This document shows positions 8,571 through 34,416 of a stretch of 64,000 nt of DNA, in pieces; within the stretch, counting starts at the first letter, position 1, and each line of letters opens with the position of its first letter. Position numbers and translations under genes: made by a program. Below the pieces are notes generated by a model. That model was not told where the DNA came from. It was given only the letters and a program-made list of their open reading frames with translations, and made no database searches. The stretch comes from Anthoceros angustus. Lineage: Eukaryota > Plantae > Anthocerotophyta. The stretch lies in assembly GCA_010909165.1 (NCBI GenBank), contig MU008179.1, positions 620,001 to 684,000 on the forward strand. The letters are read 5' to 3'.

Positions 8571-8747
8571 CATTACATGGATGCACAAGACAGTGATGCA
8601 GAGGAAACAGGAGACGCATGTAAGGAATGCGAATGCACTGTCACGAGAGCATCCTGGCACATTACATGGATGCACAAGCCAGTGATGCAGAGGAAACAGG
8701 AGACGCATGTAAGGAATGCGAATGCACTGTCACGAAAGCATCCTGGC
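8571..8747. repeat. 89-bp tandem duplication spanning the receptor kinase stop codon
   Basis: Near-identical units start at 8571 and 8660. Confidence 0.9.
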
Positions 8748-11706
8748 TTGCCTGAATTTCAGGGCCTCCAGCGTCTTGATCCAGGAGACAGTCAGGGATG
8801 CCGGCTGACTGGAGCCAGAGTCTGTGCAGCTCTTTCACTACTTCTTTCATAGTTGGTCTGTCCTTGGGAGAGGAGCTTAAACAGTGGACAGCCAGCTTAC
8901 CCATGCTGGAGATAGACGCCTTCCCAGAAGTAGACTGGTATGTTGAGGAAAGCGCAGGGTCCAAAATGAGGGGCATCTCTCGGTTTACAATGAGGGGAAT
9001 TGCCATGTTCACCAGGCTGGCCTCCTCAACACCCCTGCGAAAGTCCACCGGCGCTTGCGCAGACAGAAGCTCCAGCAGCACCACCCCAAAGCTGTAGACA
9101 TCGCTTTTACAAGTGAACTGGAAGGTCTGGTAGTACTGCGGGTCGATGTATCCGGGGGTGCCCTGCACGGCGATGGTGGACACATGTGTGGCCTCCAGAG
9201 GAGCCAGCTTGGAGATCCCGAAGTCCGCAACCTTGGCATTCAGGTTGTCATCCAGCAGAATGTTGGAGGACTTCACATCCCGGTGGAAGATAGGAGGGTT
9301 GGCAGCAGAGTGCAGGTACGCTAGGGCATCCGCTGTCTGGAGGGCCACCTGCAGCCTCTGCGGCCAGCTGAGCCCGGTGCCTCTCTCCCCTCGGAGATGC
9401 TCCCGAAGCGTCCCGTTGGAGACGTACTCGAACACCAGCACCGCAGCCTTCTTCTCCAGGCAGCATCCCAGGAGCCTCACCAGGTTGCGGTGATTCACCT
9501 TGGAGAGGATGAGGACCTCGTTCAGGAATTGGTCCTTCCCCCTGTCATTCTCCGCGCGCTTGCATTTCTTCACAGCCACGGTTGTGCCATCACTCAGCCT
9601 GCCTGCGTACACTGTGCCGAAAGCGCCCTCCCCGATCTGGCAATCCTGTGAAAAATTTGATGTGGCCCTTTGCAGGTTCCGGAGCGGCATCAAGGTGGCC
9701 TTGTCCTTGTCCTGCATCGCCGCAATCAACTCCGCGTCTTGGACATGTCTGCGGCTGTAGATTCTCCAGCGCCACCCTACTAGACAGCAAGTTGCCAAGC
9801 ATGCGAGCATGGACACATCGACCATGGCAAATATCATAATCCATGTCATCCCTTTCTTTCTTCTTGTGCTGGGAATTGGCCATGGCGCACTCTCTGCAAG
9901 CCACACCAGTGTCAGATTCGTCGGGAAGAATGCGTGCGAATTGCAGGGACTGTCATACTTCACAGGCAGTCATGACTCACCAGTTTTTTGAGGTATACCT
10001 GGGGCAGAGCCATCACAAGGTGGTAAAGGGACACCACACAGTCCTGGATTGCCGGCAAACCACTCCGGCTTCTGAAGTGCTTCTGGCAGCGCCGGCAGGG
10101 GGCCAGACAAATTGTTGCTGGAAAGGTTGAGATACGTCAGCTTCTTCAGCTTTGTCAAGCCGGCAGGAACTTGGCCCTGCAGCTGATTGTTGGACAGATC
10201 CAACCAACGCAGTAAGGGCATGTACGTCATGTTGTAAGCGCCAGGGATATCCCCTTCCAGCTTGTTGTTGCTCAGATCCAGCGTATGCAAAAGAGGCAAC
10301 ATCTTTCCGCTGGGAAGGGCTCCTGTGAGATTGGTGGCCCCTAATCTTAGCTCCTCCAAGGTGCTACCATACTTCTGGAAGATGAAACGCAGGGTGCCTT
10401 CGTCTGCCCCGCTGCTGCGAGGCCTTGCATTGTAGCCCAGATCAAGGACACTGATATTTGTGAAGTTGCTGGAACGGATCATTGCTACGGCCCCTGTGAG
10501 ATTGTTGTGCCCTAACCGCAGCTCCGTGATGTCTCCAGCAAACTGTTGCGTCGACACATCTCCGCTCAAATTGTTTTGTTGCAGGCACAGCTGCCGCAGC
10601 AGGGGCATGGACCTGTTGCTGAACCACATGGGAATGGGGCCATCTATTTGGTTATTGCTCAGATCCAGGGTGTTGAGCACACTCATTTGCCCGCTAAGCC
10701 CGTACTTCCCCACCTCAGGGATGCGTCCTGTAAGCAAATTGTGGCTCAGATTCAGCGTAGTCATGGACGCACTGGGCTGTAGCAGCTCGCCAGGAATGCC
10801 ACCGGTAAGCCGATTTGCCGACAAATCTATCATCTCAGAACGATTGCTCCATAGCCCTTGAGGAATCTCTCCCACTAACTGGTTTCCGGATATATCTAAC
10901 GACGCCAGAGACTTCAATCCTGTGCAGTCGGGGATCCTGCCGCTAAGATTGTTGTGAGACAGAGAGAGGTGTTGCATGCCCACAAGGCTGTCCAAATCCG
11001 GAATAGTGCCCGCAAGCCCGTTACTGGAGAGGTTGAGTTCCATCAAATTTCTCAGACCCGCCAGCTTGGGAATGTTGCCGGTAAGGCGGTTGTTTGACAG
11101 CTCCAAGCCTCGAAGCTCTGAAAGAGCCTGCAGATCAGGAATCGTACCTGTGAGCTCGCTGGATCCCAACGCCAAGGCCTGCAGGCTCGAGAGCACGCCG
11201 ATGCCGCTGGGAATGCTCCCGGTCAGAGGGTTGCTAGAAAGATCAAGGTAAGACAGATTCTTCATCATAACTCCAAAGTTCGCAGGCATAGGACCGGAAA
11301 AATTGTTCCTGGCCAAGTCCAAGCCGCGGAGGCTTTCGAGAGAAGCGAGAATGGGAAGAGTAGCCTGCAAAGTGCCTATCAAAGTAGGCCCGTTGTAGCT
11401 GCTAAGCAGATTGATATACTGCACGTCACCACTGAGGTTAGAGTCCTTGGACAGTCCTGGTGTGCAGGTTACTCCAGCCCACCAGCATGGATTGTCATCG
11501 CTCTCCTCCCAGTTGCTTAGCCTTCCTACTTCATCCCGTACCTGGCTTTTAAATCTGAGCAGCTGCTTGCCATCCATGGACAGAGCGTCAACCTTCCGGC
11601 TGACAACCAAGATGAAAACAAGCACCATCAGGCATTCCTTCCTTGCTAAACACAAACTAACCATGTCTTCTCCTTTCCTACAACATAACGCTGAGCACAA
11701 AGCCAT
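8662..11706 (-). CDS. LRR receptor-like kinase with WAK-like kinase domain, 2 exons (11706-9981, 9893-8662), about 985 aa
   Basis: LRRNT (NW..SD.NPC.W.GVTC), many plant LxxLxLSxNxLxGxIP repeats and a GNPGLCG cap. An 87-bp GT-AG intron (9894-9980) joins this in frame to the TM segment and a kinase with GxGxFG, VAVK, HRDVKSSN, DFG and GTPGYIDP. The start codon is uncertain. Confidence 0.92.
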
Positions 11707-12093
11707 AACGCTGGGCCATTTCACGTCTGAGCAATCAACTACTGGCCGTCACAACGTTGAGACGATTCGAGCGTGTGAAAATCCCGCCAGAAGGGGTTCA
11801 TTTTCCTATGATTAGGTGAGCAGTAGCAGAATAATTTCGTCTCAGACACCGCGTTTATTGTTAATATTCACCCACTGGGAGCCTAGACATAAAGCGCAGT
11901 TCGGGACAAGAATTTCGGCTAACTCGTAAACCAATGGCAGATAGAAATGAAAGTTTCAGATCTGCCTGTTCTAAAAATACATGGCCCACGGGCAATAAGT
12001 GTGGTGCGAAAGCCAAAACTTCACATGACCCCATGCAAAGTGATGCTGCACAGCGTAGTGATAACGTAATCCACCCTCGAAAATGTCAGCCGC

Positions 12094-15000
12094 TTATGGG
12101 AAGTCCCCACAGGAGCATGACCCAGCCTTGAAGTGATGGACACGGTGCGCATCTCGGACGATGATCTCCCGCCTTTCCATCTTAGAGATAACCTTGCTGC
12201 CACTATGGCAGTCACTGCACATTCTTAGATCCTTAATCACTAGCAAGCTAGTGCCTTCTGGTGTGTTGAGAAGGCCAAAAGCTATGGCTAGATTTTCGGC
12301 GTGGCCGCAGAGCGCATCTTCCTTCTCCCTGTTGGAAATGGGCTTCCGCACCAAATATGTGTGGGGTACATGGCCCTCCTCCTTCATTCGCACACTTAAA
12401 CTCCTTAACTTATTGTAAAGCCCAGCCCTGTGAGCCAGCTCTGTTGGACTTGTGCTGCTCGGTTCCCTCCATGAAAAGCTCCTGTCACCTACAATGAACT
12501 TGTGCACCTTGTCATTCACTTCGATCAGGGCTGTTGCAGGCTGCTTCTGAGCGCCTGCGGATCTTCGCAACCTTTCTATCTCATCGGTTTCCGCTGACAT
12601 GCCAGCATCAGAATAAATGTTTGACATTAGCACATAAGCAGCACCCCTATGGGGATCCAGTTGGATGAGACGATCAAAACATCGCTTTCCTTGATCCACA
12701 CTCCTGTATGCCTGGCATGCAGTTAGCAGAGACATCCATCCCACACCGTCTGGTTTCATTGGCATGGTTTGCAAAAGCTTTTCTGCCTCATCCACACAAC
12801 CTGACCGTCCTAACAGATCAACCATGCAGTTATAGTGATCGATTGATGGAGTGATACCATGCTCAGTTTCCATCATTTGAAAGTAATGCTGACCCTCTTT
12901 CACTAGGGCAACATGGCTGCACGCAGTAAGCAGGCAGACATAGGTTGTGGCATCAGGCTCAACTCCCTGTCGGAGCATCTCTTCGAAACACTGCACAGCC
13001 AGTCTTCCCTTGTTATGCTGGCCATAGCAATTGATCATTGCAGTCCATGCGACCACATTCCGGTTAGGCAACGTATCAAATACAACGAGGGCGTCTTCCA
13101 ACCTCCCACATCCGGTGTACATATTCATAAGTGAACTCCCAACATGCAGATCAGTGTGAAGCCCCCTTTTCAAAACGAGGGCATGTACTCTCTTGCCTTC
13201 CTGTAAGGCTCCGATGCTACCACATACGCTCAATATGGTAACAAGTGTCACTGTGTCTGGTCTGACACCCTCTTGTTGCATCCTGTGAAATAGTTCAAGG
13301 GCTTCCTGACCAGCCCCATGCCGTGTGTACCCTGCAATCATCGCAGTCCATGCCACGACATTCTTGGCTGCCAGCCCTTCGAATACTTTCTCTGCCTCCT
13401 CAAGGCATCCACAATCAATGTACATGTTAATGAGTGTGGTGGCAACGACCACATCTCTATCAAGTCCTCGCTTGACAATTTGAGCATGGACTCTCTTGCC
13501 TTCCAATATGGCTCCAGCACTGCCACATGCTCTTAAAATGCTGCCTAGTGTAATGCTATCTGGTGTTATCCCGTCCAGTTGCATTCTGCTGTAGAGCTCG
13601 AGGGCTTCAACACCCAGACCACGCTGAACATACCCTCCAATAATTGTTGTCCAAGTCACAACATTTCTGGTTGGCAATGTCTCAAAGACTCTGCGTGCCA
13701 TATCCAGATTTCCGCAGTCAGCATACATAGCCATGAGAGAATTACCAATGAAGACATCTGCCTCAAGACCCTCTTTCAAAATCTGACCATGGATCTTTTC
13801 GCCCTCCTGTATGGCGCCTATGCTTCCACAGGCTTTCAAAGCACTTAAGTATGTAAGCTTGTTTGGTATCACACCTTCCTCCTGCATCCTAACGTAAAGT
13901 CGGAGGCCCTCCTGACCTAGTCCATGCTGTGCATATCCTAAAATCATGGATGTCCAGGTAACCACATTTTTCGTGCGCAACCTATCAAAAAGGCTGCGAG
14001 CATCGTCCAACTTTCCAAATTTGCTGTACATGTTGACAAGTGCATTGCCAACAAACTGGTTGGATTCAAATCCACTATCCATCGCATCAGAATGCACCAC
14101 CTTGCCAGAGGTCAAATCATCGGCACTGGTGCATGCTTTGAGGGCAGCCACGTACACATAGTTGTTAGGTTTCACACTTGATTCTCGCATCTGCATATAG
14201 AACTGGACAGCCTTTTCAGCTTGTCCCTGCTCAGCATGTGCTGAAATAATAGACGCCCACCCAAACTCGTCCGGTGCAGACAGCCGGCTAAACACCTGGC
14301 TTGCTTCCAACAGACTGCCCTGAGCAGCATACATCCGGATGATGTGATTCCCCACACAGGTATTACATTCTTGCCCACTTCTGACAGCAAGAGCATGTAA
14401 ACGCCTGCCGAGGCCAAAGTTTTTCCTCCCAACGCATTCTGAGAGGAGGCGCTGAAACATGTCTGAAGGTACCGATACTCCTCGCTGCTCCATGAGGTCA
14501 AGCACCCCGAATGCCTCCTCGAGCTGACCATTGTCACAGAGCTTGCTCCAGGCTTCAGAACTTAAAGCCCCTTCAGTGGCTACCCTGCAAGCACCGTGCA
14601 TAACAAACAGACTGTTCAGCAAAGACCTCCAGCCACTCCAAACCTAAACCAGCAGCCAGCCTTCCCACAATGAGCAGGTTAAAAAGGAAGCACCTTACAG
14701 CGCCGTCAACCCCGCAATCCGCAGCAGGAGCTAAGCCACCGCGGTAGGACGCTCTGGTGGCACCAGCAGCTCGTGCTTCCCGTAACGCTGCAACCTTGGC
14801 TTTCACCCAAGCAGGGTTGGACCAGCCGTCGATCCACAAGCCCTCCCTTGTTGCGCTGTGCACGAAGTCCGGGTACTTGACGTTCCTCTGTGGTGATCAC
14901 TTATGGTCAACTGCACACTGTGGAACAAGCAGCGCCTAAACAGGCCTCAAAGTCTTGCTAAGCATGGCAACGTCAGGAAACTCACAGGGCTGGTCTACAA

Positions 15001-29537: not shown

Positions 29538-30600
29538 TAGGCTTGGGCTTGTTAGTATTAAAGGTAAGACTCCAGTATCGTAGTAATTAAGATAGTAATC
29601 ATTATAGTAAAGTAAAACGGTATTTTTTAGTTATATCATATGGTAATAAAAAATATAATTATATGATAAAGAATTGCATATTTATTGTAAATTTACGTAT
29701 ATATGTGAAATAAGATGACCCTTGTATAAAGTTGGTATGCTTATTTAAGTCTATTATGACAGTAGAGTGTTAAAACGGTACAGGAGTGTTAAAATGGCAT
29801 AATACTACTATTGAAGCAACAGGAGGATTGGATGGCGGATTTAGAAAGTCTTCAATCTATGTAAGTGGTTGCAGGAAGTGGCATGGAAGATGTCCGCCAA
29901 GGTGAAATGAAGGACAAGGAAGAAGCATGGAAGATGTCCGCCATGGTGAAATGGAAGACAAGAAAGAAGCATGGAAGATGTCCGCCATGGTGAAATGGAA
30001 GACAAGAAAGAAGCATGGAAGATGTCCGCCATGGTGAAATGGAAGACACGAAAGAAGCATGAAAGATCTCTGCCATGGTGAAATGGAAGACAAGAAAGAA
30101 GCATGGAAGATGTCCGCCATGGTGAAATGGAAGACACGAAAAAAGCATGAAAGATCTCTGCCATGGTGAAATGGAAGACAAGGAAGAGGCATGGAAGATG
30201 TTCGCTATGGTGAAATGAAAGACAAAGAAGAAGCATGAAAGATGTCGAAATGGAGGACAAGGAAGAAGGAGTGTGCGTCTCGGAAGGAGACTGCAAACAA
30301 TGAAGAGAAGAATCTACCTTGAGCTTATAAGTTTATTTTCATGCATGTTTACTTAAAATTATAGTATATTATATATCTATATTTTAGTATATATTATTAT
30401 ATTAACAAATCGTAATAGTTTATTTTAAATCTTAATATTTTACATACATATTAAGTATATTACATACATTATGTATATCTTATAAATTATATATGCCATA
30501 TAATTTACAATAAAAACCTTAAAATTCCTCGATGTTAGTAATTATATCATATTTTATAATAATATTATAAAATATATAATATAAATTAAAAACTAATGCT
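29538..30600 (+). mobile_element. Old, AT-eroded hAT-derived element related to the one at 43300-44221
   Basis: 29538-29660 and 30285-30600 align with the reverse complement of the two ends of the 43.3-44.2 kb element. Confidence 0.7.
29883..30270. repeat. 44-bp minisatellite, 8 full units plus a partial unit
   Basis: Unit ATGGAAGATGTCCGCCATGGTGAAATGGAAGACAAGAAAGAAGC is repeated head to tail with no spacers. Confidence 0.95.
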
Positions 30601-31011
30601 TTTACAAGAAAGATTAAATTCTAAGTCTAACATTCTAATTCTAACACCACCTGGCGGAAATTAAAAACTAATGCTTTTACAAGAAAGATTAAATTCTAAT
30701 TTTAACATTCCAATTCTAACACCATTGGATACCTATTGAATATACCATATGATTTATTTTAATATTTATATATTATATTATATTAATTTAAATAATCCCT
30801 ATTTATATATTCTATTATATTAATTTAAATAATCCCCTGAATATGATATTCAGGTGCTCAAATAACCAACGTACGAAAACAAAGTACATATTCACAAAAG
30901 TTAACAAAGTACATATTCACACTTAGTGAGTTAAGCTGTTTGTCTAAGTATGCACAGGTTTTTCACACCGATATCCACAAGCGAGGCACGTAACATCAGA
31001 GTGGCTCCAAG

Positions 31012-31094
31012 TTGGACGTTGGTGTAGACGGGCTCCACATAAGTCACAAAGAAGATAACGCCAGATTATTGTCGTGCCAAATCCCTTCTCCACA
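31012..31094 (-). repeat. Diverged tandem copy of the last ~85 coding bases of the decarboxylase
   Basis: 31012-31094 aligns with 31101-31181, sharing TTGGACGTTGGTGTAGACGGGCTC. Confidence 0.85.
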
Positions 31095-31998
31095 TCAGAA
31101 TTGGACGTTGGTGTAGACGGGCTCAACATACGTAACAAAGCAAATGGACGCCAGAATTGTGCCAAATCCTTTTTCCACTTCATGCTCCAGCACAGTATAA
31201 TCCTCATCAAAGTACTCGTATTGATCTGCGTCAAACCTTCTGGCGAATATGCTCTTCAGGTCCAACTGCAAAATCTCGCGTGCCCGTTTCTTGTTGGCGT
31301 GCCCTTTGTACTCGGCTGCATATCCGCCTATGAGTTGGTTGTCCGACTTTCTTCTGATCTGCATCAATACAACAACAAGGCATTAGTCCTTCATTTTCAG
31401 TTGCTCAGTTGGTGGACAGTGGCATGTGGAAGAGTAACCACCTGCATGCGGCCAACTCCTGCCGTAATGCGATCGCCTTTCACTCCGTGCATGACCGCCA
31501 TGATCACCTCCATGACAGCTCCGTGCCGAAAAAACGGTTTGGCTTGTTCGTATGTCACTGCTGTTGCCTCTGGCGGAATCACCGACGTGTAGCTCTGCAC
31601 GTTGAAGTCCTGGATGCCTACGGGATGCAAAGAAGTTCCATAAACTATTCCTCACGATAGCCTCAAACCATCAATCAAACAACTACCGAGAGGAATTTCA
31701 AGATCTTACCGGCGTCCTCAAGTGCCAGGTCGTAGGAGCCCGTTTCCCAGGGATCGTTTCCGTCTCCCTGATCAGTCTCACCGAAACCATGGACTGTGAA
31801 GAAGTGCAAGGGAATTCTGGAGCCAAACAGAATCCCGTGGCCACCAGCAGCAAGCTTGTGGGTGGAGAACTGTGTCACGGCGTGCTCGATTCCCAAATCG
31901 GGAGGCAGCGCCATGGGCTGCCCGTCTTCCCGCCGCTCCACATGATACTTGTGCCTCTCTTCTTTCTTGGCGTCATCCTTGGTAGCATTCAATGACAT
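31095..31998 (-). CDS. Pyruvoyl-dependent arginine decarboxylase (PvlArgDC, AaxB/PdaD-like). Exons 31998-31710, 31617-31442, 31358-31095; about 242 aa
   Basis: IP..FF.V.G.GETD.G...DPWETGSYDLALEDAG|IQDFNVQSYTSVIPP (Thr-Ser self-cleavage site), HGAVMEVIMA..G..G.RITAGVG, GGYAAEY.G and FGT.LA.ICFVTY. Two GT-AG introns join the exons in frame. Confidence 0.88.
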
Positions 31999-33168
31999 GA
32001 TATCGGGCCTGGACAACAAACAAGCATTAGCTTTCAGCTAGGAGCTCTCGCCAGTGGTTAGCAGAACAGGTAATTACGCAATCTGCTGCACTCTTCACTG
32101 CTGCAGACGACGCACTGAACCAGATCACAGGCCGCATGCCCATTACCTTGGACTGCACTCTCAGCCGTGTGTCGCGCTCCCATCCCGCCAGACTGCTGCA
32201 TGAAGCCACTGATGAACCGCCTGCCACCTGGTCCTCGCTGGGGCCACGATATATGGTGACCGGTTGTAGCCGGTCACACCAGACTCCGAGTCCTCGCAGC
32301 TGTGAAAGGACGCCGCCTGCTCCTCGGTACAGGTCTGTCCACATGCCAACCTTTCAAGGCAGAAACATACGATGGGCAAGGAATGTAACAGCACCTGCAC
32401 ACATCGTTAGTTTCAAAATTTCTCTGGACCCGGCACTCGATCCTAAGCCCTGCGGGCACACATTTGTGGTGTCCATGATCATTCTGCGGCCTCCGAAATT
32501 TAGTACAGTCTACAAGGCTTCTACATCTGAAGGACTTCAATATGATCATCTCACATTCCACAGAGCCTACACTATTCCCAGGGGCTTAAGGATTTCCTGC
32601 CGCTTGGCATCTGCTGTTTTGGAAATGCAGGCAAGCCAGAGGTATGAAGTTGAAAGATCTCCTAAAGATGCGTTCAGGCATGTCATTTCTACAGCCCCTT
32701 GAGTTGATCACTTCTTTGCACCTTCATATTAGTCACGAATATTTCTTCTATGATGACCAGCATTGATATAAGTACTTCGTTTTACTAGCAAGAAACACTG
32801 AACTTCGCAAAATGCACATCCCTGTCTATACCACCGAATTTGCGGATTAATCCAGGAAAACATTGGAGACTGCATCCAGTGGCCTCTGCACCATAGTAGG
32901 CTTGGCATCCCTGCTCTGTGACCTCAAATCCATCCTGAATTCCCTGATACAAGCCTTAGGTACTCTGACTATCTGCATGATTAATTGCTAGAACAAACCT
33001 CCTGACGTGAGATGCGGCAACATATTCCCTGTGGCAAATCCTAAACATTGCGTGCCTCACAAAGCAGATCGAACATTTCCGGAACACCACACCGGCAAAC
33101 AACAGCAATGTTTCCAAAGTCAGGGTTAGATTGAAAGCGGAGGTGGATGGAGGTGATTTAAGATCATC

Positions 33169-34416
33169 ATGGAATCTGCAGACGAAAGATCTGGCTCAGT
33201 CAGGATTTGCGGCAGAAGGAACTGTCACCGAGGCAGCCGGGGCAAGGGGCTTGCCAGCTCTAGCAGATCCGGCGAACCTGAGAGGTCTGAAGGAACTCAA
33301 ACAAACGGAGAGCAGGAAATCCAGGGATGTCGAAAGCGGCGCAGACTGACTAAACTACAGTACGCTTCGGAACACATTGGATCAGACTATAGCGAAATCC
33401 CACAGGAAGTGGTAGAGCCAGTGCCAGGGGAGTCAGACGACGAAGACGCTCCAGGCGAGGGGGACAATGAAGCTTCCCGAAGGCAGCGCAGATCCTCCTC
33501 CCCTGCGCAGCGTCCCAGTCCACAGTCCTCCCAAGCCGCTGCTGTGCACGCTGCCACTTCCTGCTCAGCCAATTCATCGGGCAACAAGCAGGCCCTAGAA
33601 CCCGCCGATTTCAGCAAGCTTGTACAAAATGCGGGCAGCAAACAAGGCAAGGACGGATCCGGCCGGCGCGGCCGGAGGAGCATGAAGGTTGCCGCCGCAA
33701 GGGCAATCGCTCGCAAGAGGAAACGGAACCGCCGGCGCCGACGCCGGAATCCGGGCCGGCATCTCGCCTGGGTCCAGACCCGGGCAGCGGAACGAGGCCG
33801 TCTCCGACGACTGCTCCGGCGACGGAAACGGCGACACAACAGACGGAGGCGACGACGGCGGCGGTCGTTGTCGCCGTCCGGCTACCGGTCGCGATCTCCG
33901 TCGAGGTCTCGCTCCCGGTCGCCGCACAATAGCCTGGAGTCCCCTCGGAGCACCAAGGACGCCCTGGCGCTGGCCTGTAACTGGGACGCGGCATGGGCCA
34001 GCTGCTCTGCCGCGGCGGCTACCGCGTCCTCTGGTCGCACAACCACAACCGCCAGTAGCGGCTCATCAGACACCGACTCCTCCAGTGCTAGTTGGCTCAA
34101 GCCTGCGATCAAACGCAAAAACAGACACAAACAGCACCGCAACAAAAAACATAAGAACAAACCTTCTCAGCAAATCGACATCGAGGACTTATTGATCGAC
34201 ACTCAATCCTTGAAGCCTCGTCTTATGTTCACCAGATTTGATCTCAGACCCCGTTCTCTTGTTAAAGGTAATGCTCCATTTGTTGCCCAGCCGATGCCAG
34301 TAGGATGTTATGTTATCATACTTTCAAGTGCTTCACTTTTGTGGAAAAATATCACCCATTCCAATCTTGTTGCCCTTGATTCCAATTGGCTTGCTTCCAT
34401 ATTGTTCAACAGCTAA
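33169..34416 (+). CDS. Unassigned GC-rich, Arg/Ser-rich low-complexity ORF (strand and reality uncertain)
   Basis: 415-aa open frame, but other frames are also open and the minus strand shows an intron-like tract near 34105-34170. No recognisable domain. Confidence 0.2.
   Translation: MESADERSGSVRICGRRNCHRGSRGKGLASSSRSGEPERSEGTQTNGEQEIQGCRKRRRLTKLQYASEHIGSDYSEIPQEVVEPVPGESDDEDAPGEGDNEASRRQRRSSSPAQRPSPQSSQAAAVHAATSCSANSSGNKQALEPADFSKLVQNAGSKQGKDGSGRRGRRSMKVAAARAIARKRKRNRRRRRRNPGRHLAWVQTRAAERGRLRRLLRRRKRRHNRRRRRRRRSLSPSGYRSRSPSRSRSRSPHNSLESPRSTKDALALACNWDAAWASCSAAAATASSGRTTTTASSGSSDTDSSSASWLKPAIKRKNRHKQHRNKKHKNKPSQQIDIEDLLIDTQSLKPRLMFTRFDLRPRSLVKGNAPFVAQPMPVGCYVIILSSASLLWKNITHSNLVALDSNWLASILFNS

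Follow-up and report, generated by a model that had tools for sequence, protein, structure and literature searches.

The window, by which we mean the whole stretch of 64,000 nucleotides analysed here, carries on its minus strand a genuine nuclear gene of a plant, which is spliced and expressed and whose product is assigned by profile matching to the pyruvoyl-dependent arginine decarboxylase family (PvlArgDC, PF01862). With a probability of about 0.7, we consider it to be a functional nuclear proenzyme gene of a seed-free land plant, which most likely serves the conversion of arginine to agmatine and which descends from one ancient prokaryote-derived copy that was seemingly lost before or within the seed plants. 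Gene structure, splicing, transcript-like expression, purifying selection, the family and fold of the clade, the catalytic residues, the single green clade and the shared introns are directly supported. The enzyme is probably a self-cleaving decarboxylase of the pyruvoyl type, i.e., independent of vitamin B6, and by family an arginine decarboxylase.

The coding sequence spans exactly 31095-31998 on the minus strand (ATG at 31998, stop TGA at 31097-31095). It consists of three coding exons and two GT-AG introns, and the 729 nt of the joined exons encode 242 aa plus the stop. The original prediction had given three exons, 242 aa and three motifs, all of which were confirmed, and its ends coincide with the start and the stop. 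In the protein, DPWETGSYDLAL occupies residues 82-93, FNVQSYTSVIPP residues 101-112, and HGAVMEVIMA residues 128-137. The features of the gene, in the direction of transcription, are as follows:

32147..33500, minus strand: 5' leader upstream of the leader intron; contig pieces run over 32146-33500 without a further joint and extend past 33500; in-frame TGA at 32163-32161.
32009..32146, minus strand: leader (5' untranslated) intron, GT..AG; the contigs from runs X1 and X3 lack it (joint 32007/8 to 32146/7).
31710..32008, minus strand: exon 1, with 10 nt of leader and the coding part 31998..31710 (289 nt) for residues 1-96 and the first base of Gly97.
31998..31710, minus strand: content of exon 1, i.e., the 61-aa N-terminal extension, the start of the PvlArgDC domain and DPWETGSYDLAL; Asp90 codon at 31731-31729.
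31618..31709, minus strand: intron 1, 92 nt, GT..AG, phase 1, within the Gly97 codon; skipped in contigs of four runs.
31442..31617, minus strand: exon 2, 176 nt, residues 97-155, with HGAVMEVIMA; Asn102 codon at 31603-31601.
31585-31583, minus strand: Ser codon of the predicted cleavage site Thr107-Ser108 in exon 2, placed by equivalence to Ser53 of Methanocaldococcus jannaschii.
31359..31441, minus strand: intron 2, 83 nt, GT..AG, phase 0; skipped in contigs of four runs.
31095..31358, minus strand: coding part of exon 3, residues 156-242 and TGA; Glu171 codon at 31313-31311, equivalent to Glu109 of M. jannaschii.
30822..31094, minus strand: 3' untranslated region, which includes a degenerate tandem copy of the coding end; the X1 contig starts at 30822.

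The in-frame TGA at 32163-32161 lies in the spliced leader, five codons ahead of the splice junction. Hence, the frame opens at the ATG at 31998. At the other end, the C-terminus reaches the end of the Selaginella protein in the alignment, and the stop is therefore genuine. The N-terminal extension, which had been put at roughly 60 aa, measures 61 aa, as the Pfam domain starts at Ile62 (a boundary transferred from the Selaginella orthologue).

Repeats were observed around the 3' end of the gene. The degenerate tandem copy repeats the final ~85 coding nucleotides and lies on the minus strand directly past the stop, at ~30995-31092 (aligned with 31085-31180). It is 84% identical, and indels disrupt its frame. 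Independently, the Riccia fluitans gene has a perfect repeat of the last ~20 codons, the stop and the following bases ~55 nt downstream (L031, 1473-1535). AT-rich short direct repeats occur just downstream of the gene at 30600-30840, with a ~60-nt unit present twice at 30600-30720 and a ~50-nt unit present twice at 30740-30840.

Expression and splicing were followed by comparing contigs of four sequencing runs, from four organisms, with positions 30000-33500. The runs are only guessed to be RNA, and their contigs are called transcript-like here. In one run, 70% of the words sampled from the locus are present, and a contig of run X1 is 100% identical to the window across 2,366 nt. In all four runs, both coding introns (31359-31441 and 31618-31708/9) are exactly absent from the contigs, and in two of them (X1 and X3), the leader intron at 32009-32146 is removed as well. 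Every piece that is skipped is bounded by CT..AC on the plus strand, corresponding to GT..AG on the gene strand. The precise loss of three canonical introns in four organisms resembles what cDNA-derived assemblies give. The predicted splicing is thus borne out by these transcript-like contigs.

Upstream of the leader intron, the transcript-like contigs continue unspliced for more than 1.3 kb and reach an open reading frame on the plus strand (33169-34416; 415 aa, rich in Arg and Ser, without a Pfam match). The transcribed stretch 32147..33500 may be an unusually long leader that contains upstream ATGs, or a neighbouring transcript may have been merged in, i.e., an unstranded assembly may have fused two overlapping divergent transcripts.

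The contigs also allow the coding sequence to be compared between species. Among the best-supported differences listed, 25 of 31 fall at third codon positions, and four of the remaining six affect residues 29-34, within the N-terminal extension. This third-position bias is the pattern of purifying selection. Together with the intact frame, the canonical splice sites, the retention of all catalytic residues and a C-terminus that aligns to the ends of the orthologues, it speaks against a catalytically dead relic or pseudo-enzyme, which would have a non-enzymatic role or be decaying and whose transcript would be metabolically irrelevant. Such a relic would fit the fact that seed plants apparently manage without the gene, and the degenerate 3'-end duplicate in the 3' untranslated region does indicate local rearrangement. 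On balance, we regard a relic as very improbable and keep to a functional gene.

For searches, alignments and trees, the window protein was compared exon by exon, with the three exons as separate sequences. Exon 2 alone matches the Pfam profile PvlArgDC (PF01862) at positions 29-85 with E=2e-12 and 47.7 bits, where the gathering cut-off is 22.7, so that a chance match can be dismissed. Exon 3 matches positions 92-161 in the C-terminal half of the profile (E=0.0045, 17.3 bits), and exon 1 alone has no Pfam match. The Pfam scan of the three exons gave PF01862 only; the PLP-dependent Orn/DAP/Arg decarboxylase domain (PF02784) was found in none of them. With plant orthologues and their closest relatives in bacteria, the match extends over the whole PF01862 profile and reaches 96-117 bits. 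The three exons align ungapped and end to end with land-plant homologues, the best matches being 53-79% identical per exon; on the Sphagnum protein, exon 1 corresponds to residues 102-195, exon 2 to residues 197-254, and exon 3 to residues 255-337. The predicted family assignment is thus upheld, and the locus is, by its profile matches, a member of PF01862.

The link to solved structures was made via P0003, the closest full-length homologue, and via a fold search, as phmmer with exon 2 against PDB sequences gave no match and a search of the ESM Atlas with exon 2 gave no usable one. P0003 aligns with the M. jannaschii enzyme in the PDB entries 1N2M (S53A proenzyme) and 2QQD (N47A mutant) at E=7e-6; an E109Q mutant is also among the entries. 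Through this alignment, D90, N102, T107-S108 and E171 of the window protein are equivalent to Asp35, Asn47, Ser52-Ser53 and Glu109 of M. jannaschii, respectively. T107-S108 sits in YTSVIPP, and the Thr in front of the Ser matches the rule of the family, which has Ser or Thr before the equivalent of Ser53. The columns of the catalytic Asn, Ser and Glu are invariant in 26 of 26 green-lineage sequences. In AaxB of Chlamydia pneumoniae, self-cleavage takes place at Ser53, and Glu109 aids cleavage in this family (PMC2720952).

For the Selaginella orthologue, an AlphaFold model (mean pLDDT 80.5, above 90 across most of the core) agrees with the fold of the family. In Foldseek, it matches 1N2M with a TM score of 0.86-0.88, an rmsd of 2.5 Å and E=1e-12. 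The next-best fold, the pyruvoyl histidine decarboxylase 1PYA, is far weaker (E=0.016).

From these equivalences, the following reaction course can be proposed. The 242-aa chain would fold and cut itself between Thr107 and Ser108 by serinolysis, and Asn102 and Glu171 would assist this self-cleavage. The products would be a beta chain of residues 1-107 (~12 kDa) and an alpha chain of residues 108-242 (~15 kDa), and the serine then exposed at the N-terminus of the alpha chain would be converted to the pyruvoyl cofactor. The substrate is expected to be held through its alpha-amino group, as a Schiff base, by the pyruvoyl group, which would drive the loss of CO2. The likeliest reaction would be that of L-arginine to agmatine, which would provide a PLP-independent entry to the synthesis of putrescine and polyamines.

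The position of the gene among its relatives was analysed with IQ-TREE (LG+C20 PMSF, 77 sequences), and 200 bootstrap trees were checked. All 29 green-lineage rows form one clade (ultrafast bootstrap 98, SH-aLRT 99), which is present in 100% of the 200 bootstrap trees; the land-plant subclade has a support of 98/85. The window exons, entered as three separate rows, are each placed within the clade of the land plants (SH-aLRT 97). The comparison with prokaryotic and algal PvlArgDC that the original prediction had called for thus places the exons in the land-plant part of a single green clade. This clade is nested among prokaryotic sequences. Its prokaryotic sister has a support of 60/0 and the branches are long, so that no donor is named.

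The introns give the same picture. The sites of introns 1 and 2 are common to Sphagnum (moss), Adiantum (fern) and Calypogeia (leafy liverwort), which have the same 176-nt middle exon; for Sphagnum and Adiantum, the phases were determined as 1 and 0. In the chlorophyte Myrmecia, there is an intron exactly at the intron-2 site of the window; it is in phase 0, and the residues on either side of it align with Q155 and I156. The domain is free of introns in Marchantia and Riccia, which have lost both of them. In Coccomyxa viridis, six introns are present at other positions. Judged by the shared sites, both land-plant introns are older than the divergence of the sampled land-plant lineages. One green clade and shared intron positions mean that the gene is nuclear and has been inherited vertically since before the split of chlorophytes and streptophytes, and that the original transfer from a prokaryote to a eukaryote is older than this split. 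A single prokaryote-derived copy would have been present in the green-plant ancestor and was seemingly lost before or within the seed plants.

These data bear on bacterial contamination of the assembly and on a recent, plant-specific horizontal transfer, to which we give practically no probability. Either could be suggested by the overwhelmingly prokaryotic distribution of the family and by bacterial sequences that are as close as 53-57% identity to P0003. However, the contigs show the removal of three spliceosomal introns from the gene, its exons lie within the land-plant clade, and its intron positions are common to moss, liverwort and fern and, for intron 2, to a chlorophyte. The same window also contains plant genes. 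At 12094-14622 on the minus strand, there is a PPR protein of 842 aa whose domains include an E motif and a DYW deaminase; at 9970-11724 and 8662-9963, also on the minus strand, there are an open reading frame for an LRR ectodomain (LRRNT_2 and LRR) and one for a protein kinase, which are probably one LRR receptor kinase. The gene is neither contamination nor a recent transfer. The introns had been cited earlier as an argument against bacterial contamination, and this argument stands. Between the two histories considered at that time, retention only in seed-free plants fits the green clade, the shared introns and the failure to match seed plants best, and a recent horizontal transfer does not hold.

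An exhaustive HMMER search, in which exon 2 was compared with 1.84 billion representatives, returned only 77 matches at E<=1e-3, and the named members of the top clusters were from Adiantum nelumboides, Pteridium aquilinum and Spirogloea muscicola. A word-index search with P0003 added Calypogeia fissa, Sphagnum compactum, Marchantia polymorpha, Riccia fluitans, Selaginella moellendorffii, Chlorokybus atmophyticus, Myrmecia bisecta, two Coccomyxa species and Botryococcus braunii. The green-lineage homologues thereby span liverworts, a moss, a lycophyte, ferns, streptophyte algae and chlorophytes. Those of liverworts, moss, lycophyte and ferns are about equally distant from the window protein and none comes close to identity with it, which would fit a hornwort as the source. 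After them, the matches to P0003 are bacterial and metagenomic proteins with 43-57% identity to it.

Wide distribution in seed plants would have removed the novelty of the gene, and no seed-plant protein was found in any of four database searches. A profile of 26 green-lineage sequences, run over 7,571 candidates, returned the same eukaryotes. The searched collection takes in NCBI nr and UniRef, so that annotated seed-plant proteomes were within reach. A word-index search with the fern protein, which is a weak test of seed-plant absence, gave only six matches and none from a seed plant. In the table of differentially expressed genes of one paper, the grapevine gene VIT_09s0002g02030 bears the label 'pyruvoyl-dependent arginine decarboxylase,' and the table offers the label only. 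Because of this label, absence from seed plants is not proven.

In NCBI or UniRef, automatic annotation has already given the name arginine decarboxylase to orthologues from Marchantia, Riccia, Selaginella and Coccomyxa. In the literature searched, we found no paper that deals with plant or algal PF01862 enzymes; the 'prokaryotic ADC' reported from duckweed is a PLP enzyme and was set aside as not relevant. The locus is one more orthologue in a green-lineage clade that is already labelled in databases and is seemingly unstudied. Its novelty is hence smaller than had been implied at first.

The nearest prokaryotic genes are scattered over Desulfarculaceae, Ignavibacteriae, Omnitrophota, Methanothrix, Sorangium and others. 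Some of the prokaryotic relatives have features of their own. Many of those closest in the DPWETGSYDLAL motif (P0011, P0013, P0017, P0021, P0030 and the Methanothrix sequences L009-L024) have hydrophobic N-termini that resemble signal peptides or those of lipoproteins, which would place a pyruvoyl decarboxylase outside the cytoplasm. The metagenomic proteins P0009, P0010, P0015 and P0019 (286-479 aa) combine the PvlArgDC domain with a long conserved N-terminal region of unknown function, for which one of them gives a weak hint of DUF4760; this group clusters with the signal-peptide-bearing bacterial proteins P0011, P0017, P0021 and P0030. For P0199 (293 aa, JGI metagenome), the precomputed Pfam data list PF01862 and PF02666 (phosphatidylserine decarboxylase) on one protein, which may be a fusion of two pyruvoyl-enzyme families.

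As to the substrate, the equivalog models of NCBIfam were consulted. Plant orthologues score 49-65 bits on TIGR00286, where the cut-off is 107, and 44-57 bits on NF009064, where it is 207. The nearest bacterial relatives score 40-45 bits on these models, below both cut-offs. Since the scores are well under the equivalog cut-offs, the proteins are filed at the family level, and arginine as the substrate is inferred. By the same scores, the green clade and its nearest bacterial relatives are a separate subfamily. We know of no assayed member of this green-lineage subfamily, and none was found in the literature searched.

The gene neighbourhoods of the bacterial relatives show no consistent link to polyamines. 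In one gammaproteobacterial relative (L017), a gene for an amino-acid permease of the APC family lies 14 nt downstream of the decarboxylase gene, an order that recalls aaxB-aaxC, where aaxC encodes the arginine:agmatine antiporter (PMC2720952). One PvlArgDC gene of Methanothrix has a PLP-dependent Orn/DAP/Arg decarboxylase gene next downstream. Unrelated genes were found in the other bacterial neighbourhoods examined.

The low equivalog scores of the clade and its closest bacterial relatives, together with its separate branch at ~23% identity to the solved archaeal enzyme, would also fit an enzyme with the same fold and self-processing pyruvoyl chemistry that acts on another substrate, such as ornithine, lysine, citrulline, homoarginine or another basic amino acid, in which case there would be no second route to agmatine. 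Other pyruvoyl decarboxylase families do switch substrates, as AdoMetDC homologues have turned into ornithine and arginine decarboxylases (PMC10407285, PMC9992855). Against such a switch, the equivalents of Asp35, Asn47, Ser53 and Glu109 are all retained, and the order of decarboxylase and permease genes in the gammaproteobacterial relative resembles that of aaxB-aaxC. Moreover, all characterised members of PF01862 are, to our knowledge, arginine decarboxylases. We consider another substrate unlikely. Arginine would be the most likely substrate, at odds of about two in three, and the second route to agmatine that had been proposed at the outset should be understood as a prediction from family membership.

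The N-terminal extension differs between lineages. Conservation among land plants covers its residues ~27 to 61. In the window protein, the first 25 residues are highly charged (seven acidic and seven basic), whereas Sphagnum, Riccia, Spirogloea, Pteridium and P0003 have N-termini that are rich in Ser, Thr and Ala and poor in acidic residues, similar to transit peptides. As the N-termini contrast in this way, the location may differ by lineage, and the window protein would be cytosolic. In the Marchantia polymorpha model (L027, 1501-2800; 373 aa), a 65-aa first exon is joined to the main exon, which has an in-frame Met followed by a transit-peptide-like stretch. The true Marchantia gene may have a single-exon coding sequence like that of Riccia.

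A tentative extension of these data, which we hold to be possible but not likely, is that the green PvlArgDC clade is a functionally distinct, uncharacterised subfamily with its own substrate preference or role, with a motif in front of the domain that land plants conserve, and with plastid-like or cytosolic N-termini depending on the lineage. If so, algae and seed-free plants would have a PLP-independent decarboxylase, e.g., for stress- or compartment-specific amine synthesis, and polyamine metabolism would have been rewired when seed plants arose, as marked by the loss of this enzyme.

In the textbook account, PLP-dependent arginine or ornithine decarboxylases carry out the first step of polyamine synthesis in plants. 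The present data indicate a second decarboxylase family, of pyruvoyl type and prokaryotic origin, in the nuclear genomes of green plants since before the chlorophyte/streptophyte split. The gene is expressed and under purifying selection in seed-free plants and offers a testable case of an ancient gene acquisition followed by lineage-specific loss. It also points to an uncharacterised enzyme subfamily whose substrate and compartment are so far predictions. The value lies in the family-wide pattern, to which the locus adds one orthologue from a lineage outside the named database matches.

Among known systems, the automatically annotated green orthologues are among the closest. Like the window protein, they belong to the green clade and have its domain layout and catalytic residues, and most of the land-plant members also share both intron sites. 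The window protein differs from those of Sphagnum, Riccia, Spirogloea and Pteridium in that it does not have their Ser/Thr-rich, acid-poor N-terminus. The PLP-dependent arginine decarboxylase of land plants (SpeA-like, PF02784) catalyses the reaction presumed for the window protein, from arginine to agmatine, but has an unrelated fold and cofactor.

The PvlArgDC of M. jannaschii (MJ0316; PDB 1MT1, 1N13, 1N2M, 2QQC and 2QQD) belongs to the same Pfam family, has the serinolysis site and the residues Asn47 and Glu109, whose equivalents are kept in the window protein, and has the same fold as the Selaginella model. In contrast to this enzyme, to which its identity is ~23%, the plant protein has the 61-aa extension, a T-S cleavage dipeptide where the archaeal enzyme has S-S, and a gene with spliceosomal introns. 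AaxB of C. pneumoniae is likewise a self-cleaving, pyruvoyl-dependent member of the family (PMC2720952), and the T-S cleavage dipeptide of the window protein is of the AaxB type. The original prediction had read YT-SV.P as the site of the chlamydial enzyme and its relatives. As a predicted self-cleavage site, it holds; the T-S dipeptide is not specifically chlamydial because several plant orthologues carry S-S, as does M. jannaschii. AaxB is encoded in an operon with a porin and an antiporter and has an acidic pH optimum near 3.4. An AaxABC-type layout with a transporter was not found near the plant gene, as the long neighbouring open reading frames of the window have no Pfam transporter match, and among the bacterial relatives, only L017 has an APC permease directly downstream.

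Ao-ADC1 of Aspergillus oryzae is a eukaryotic, pyruvoyl-dependent and self-cleaving arginine decarboxylase as well. It belongs, however, to the phosphatidylserine decarboxylase family (PF02666), is cleaved between Gly and Ser, and is not homologous to PF01862 (PMC12904898).
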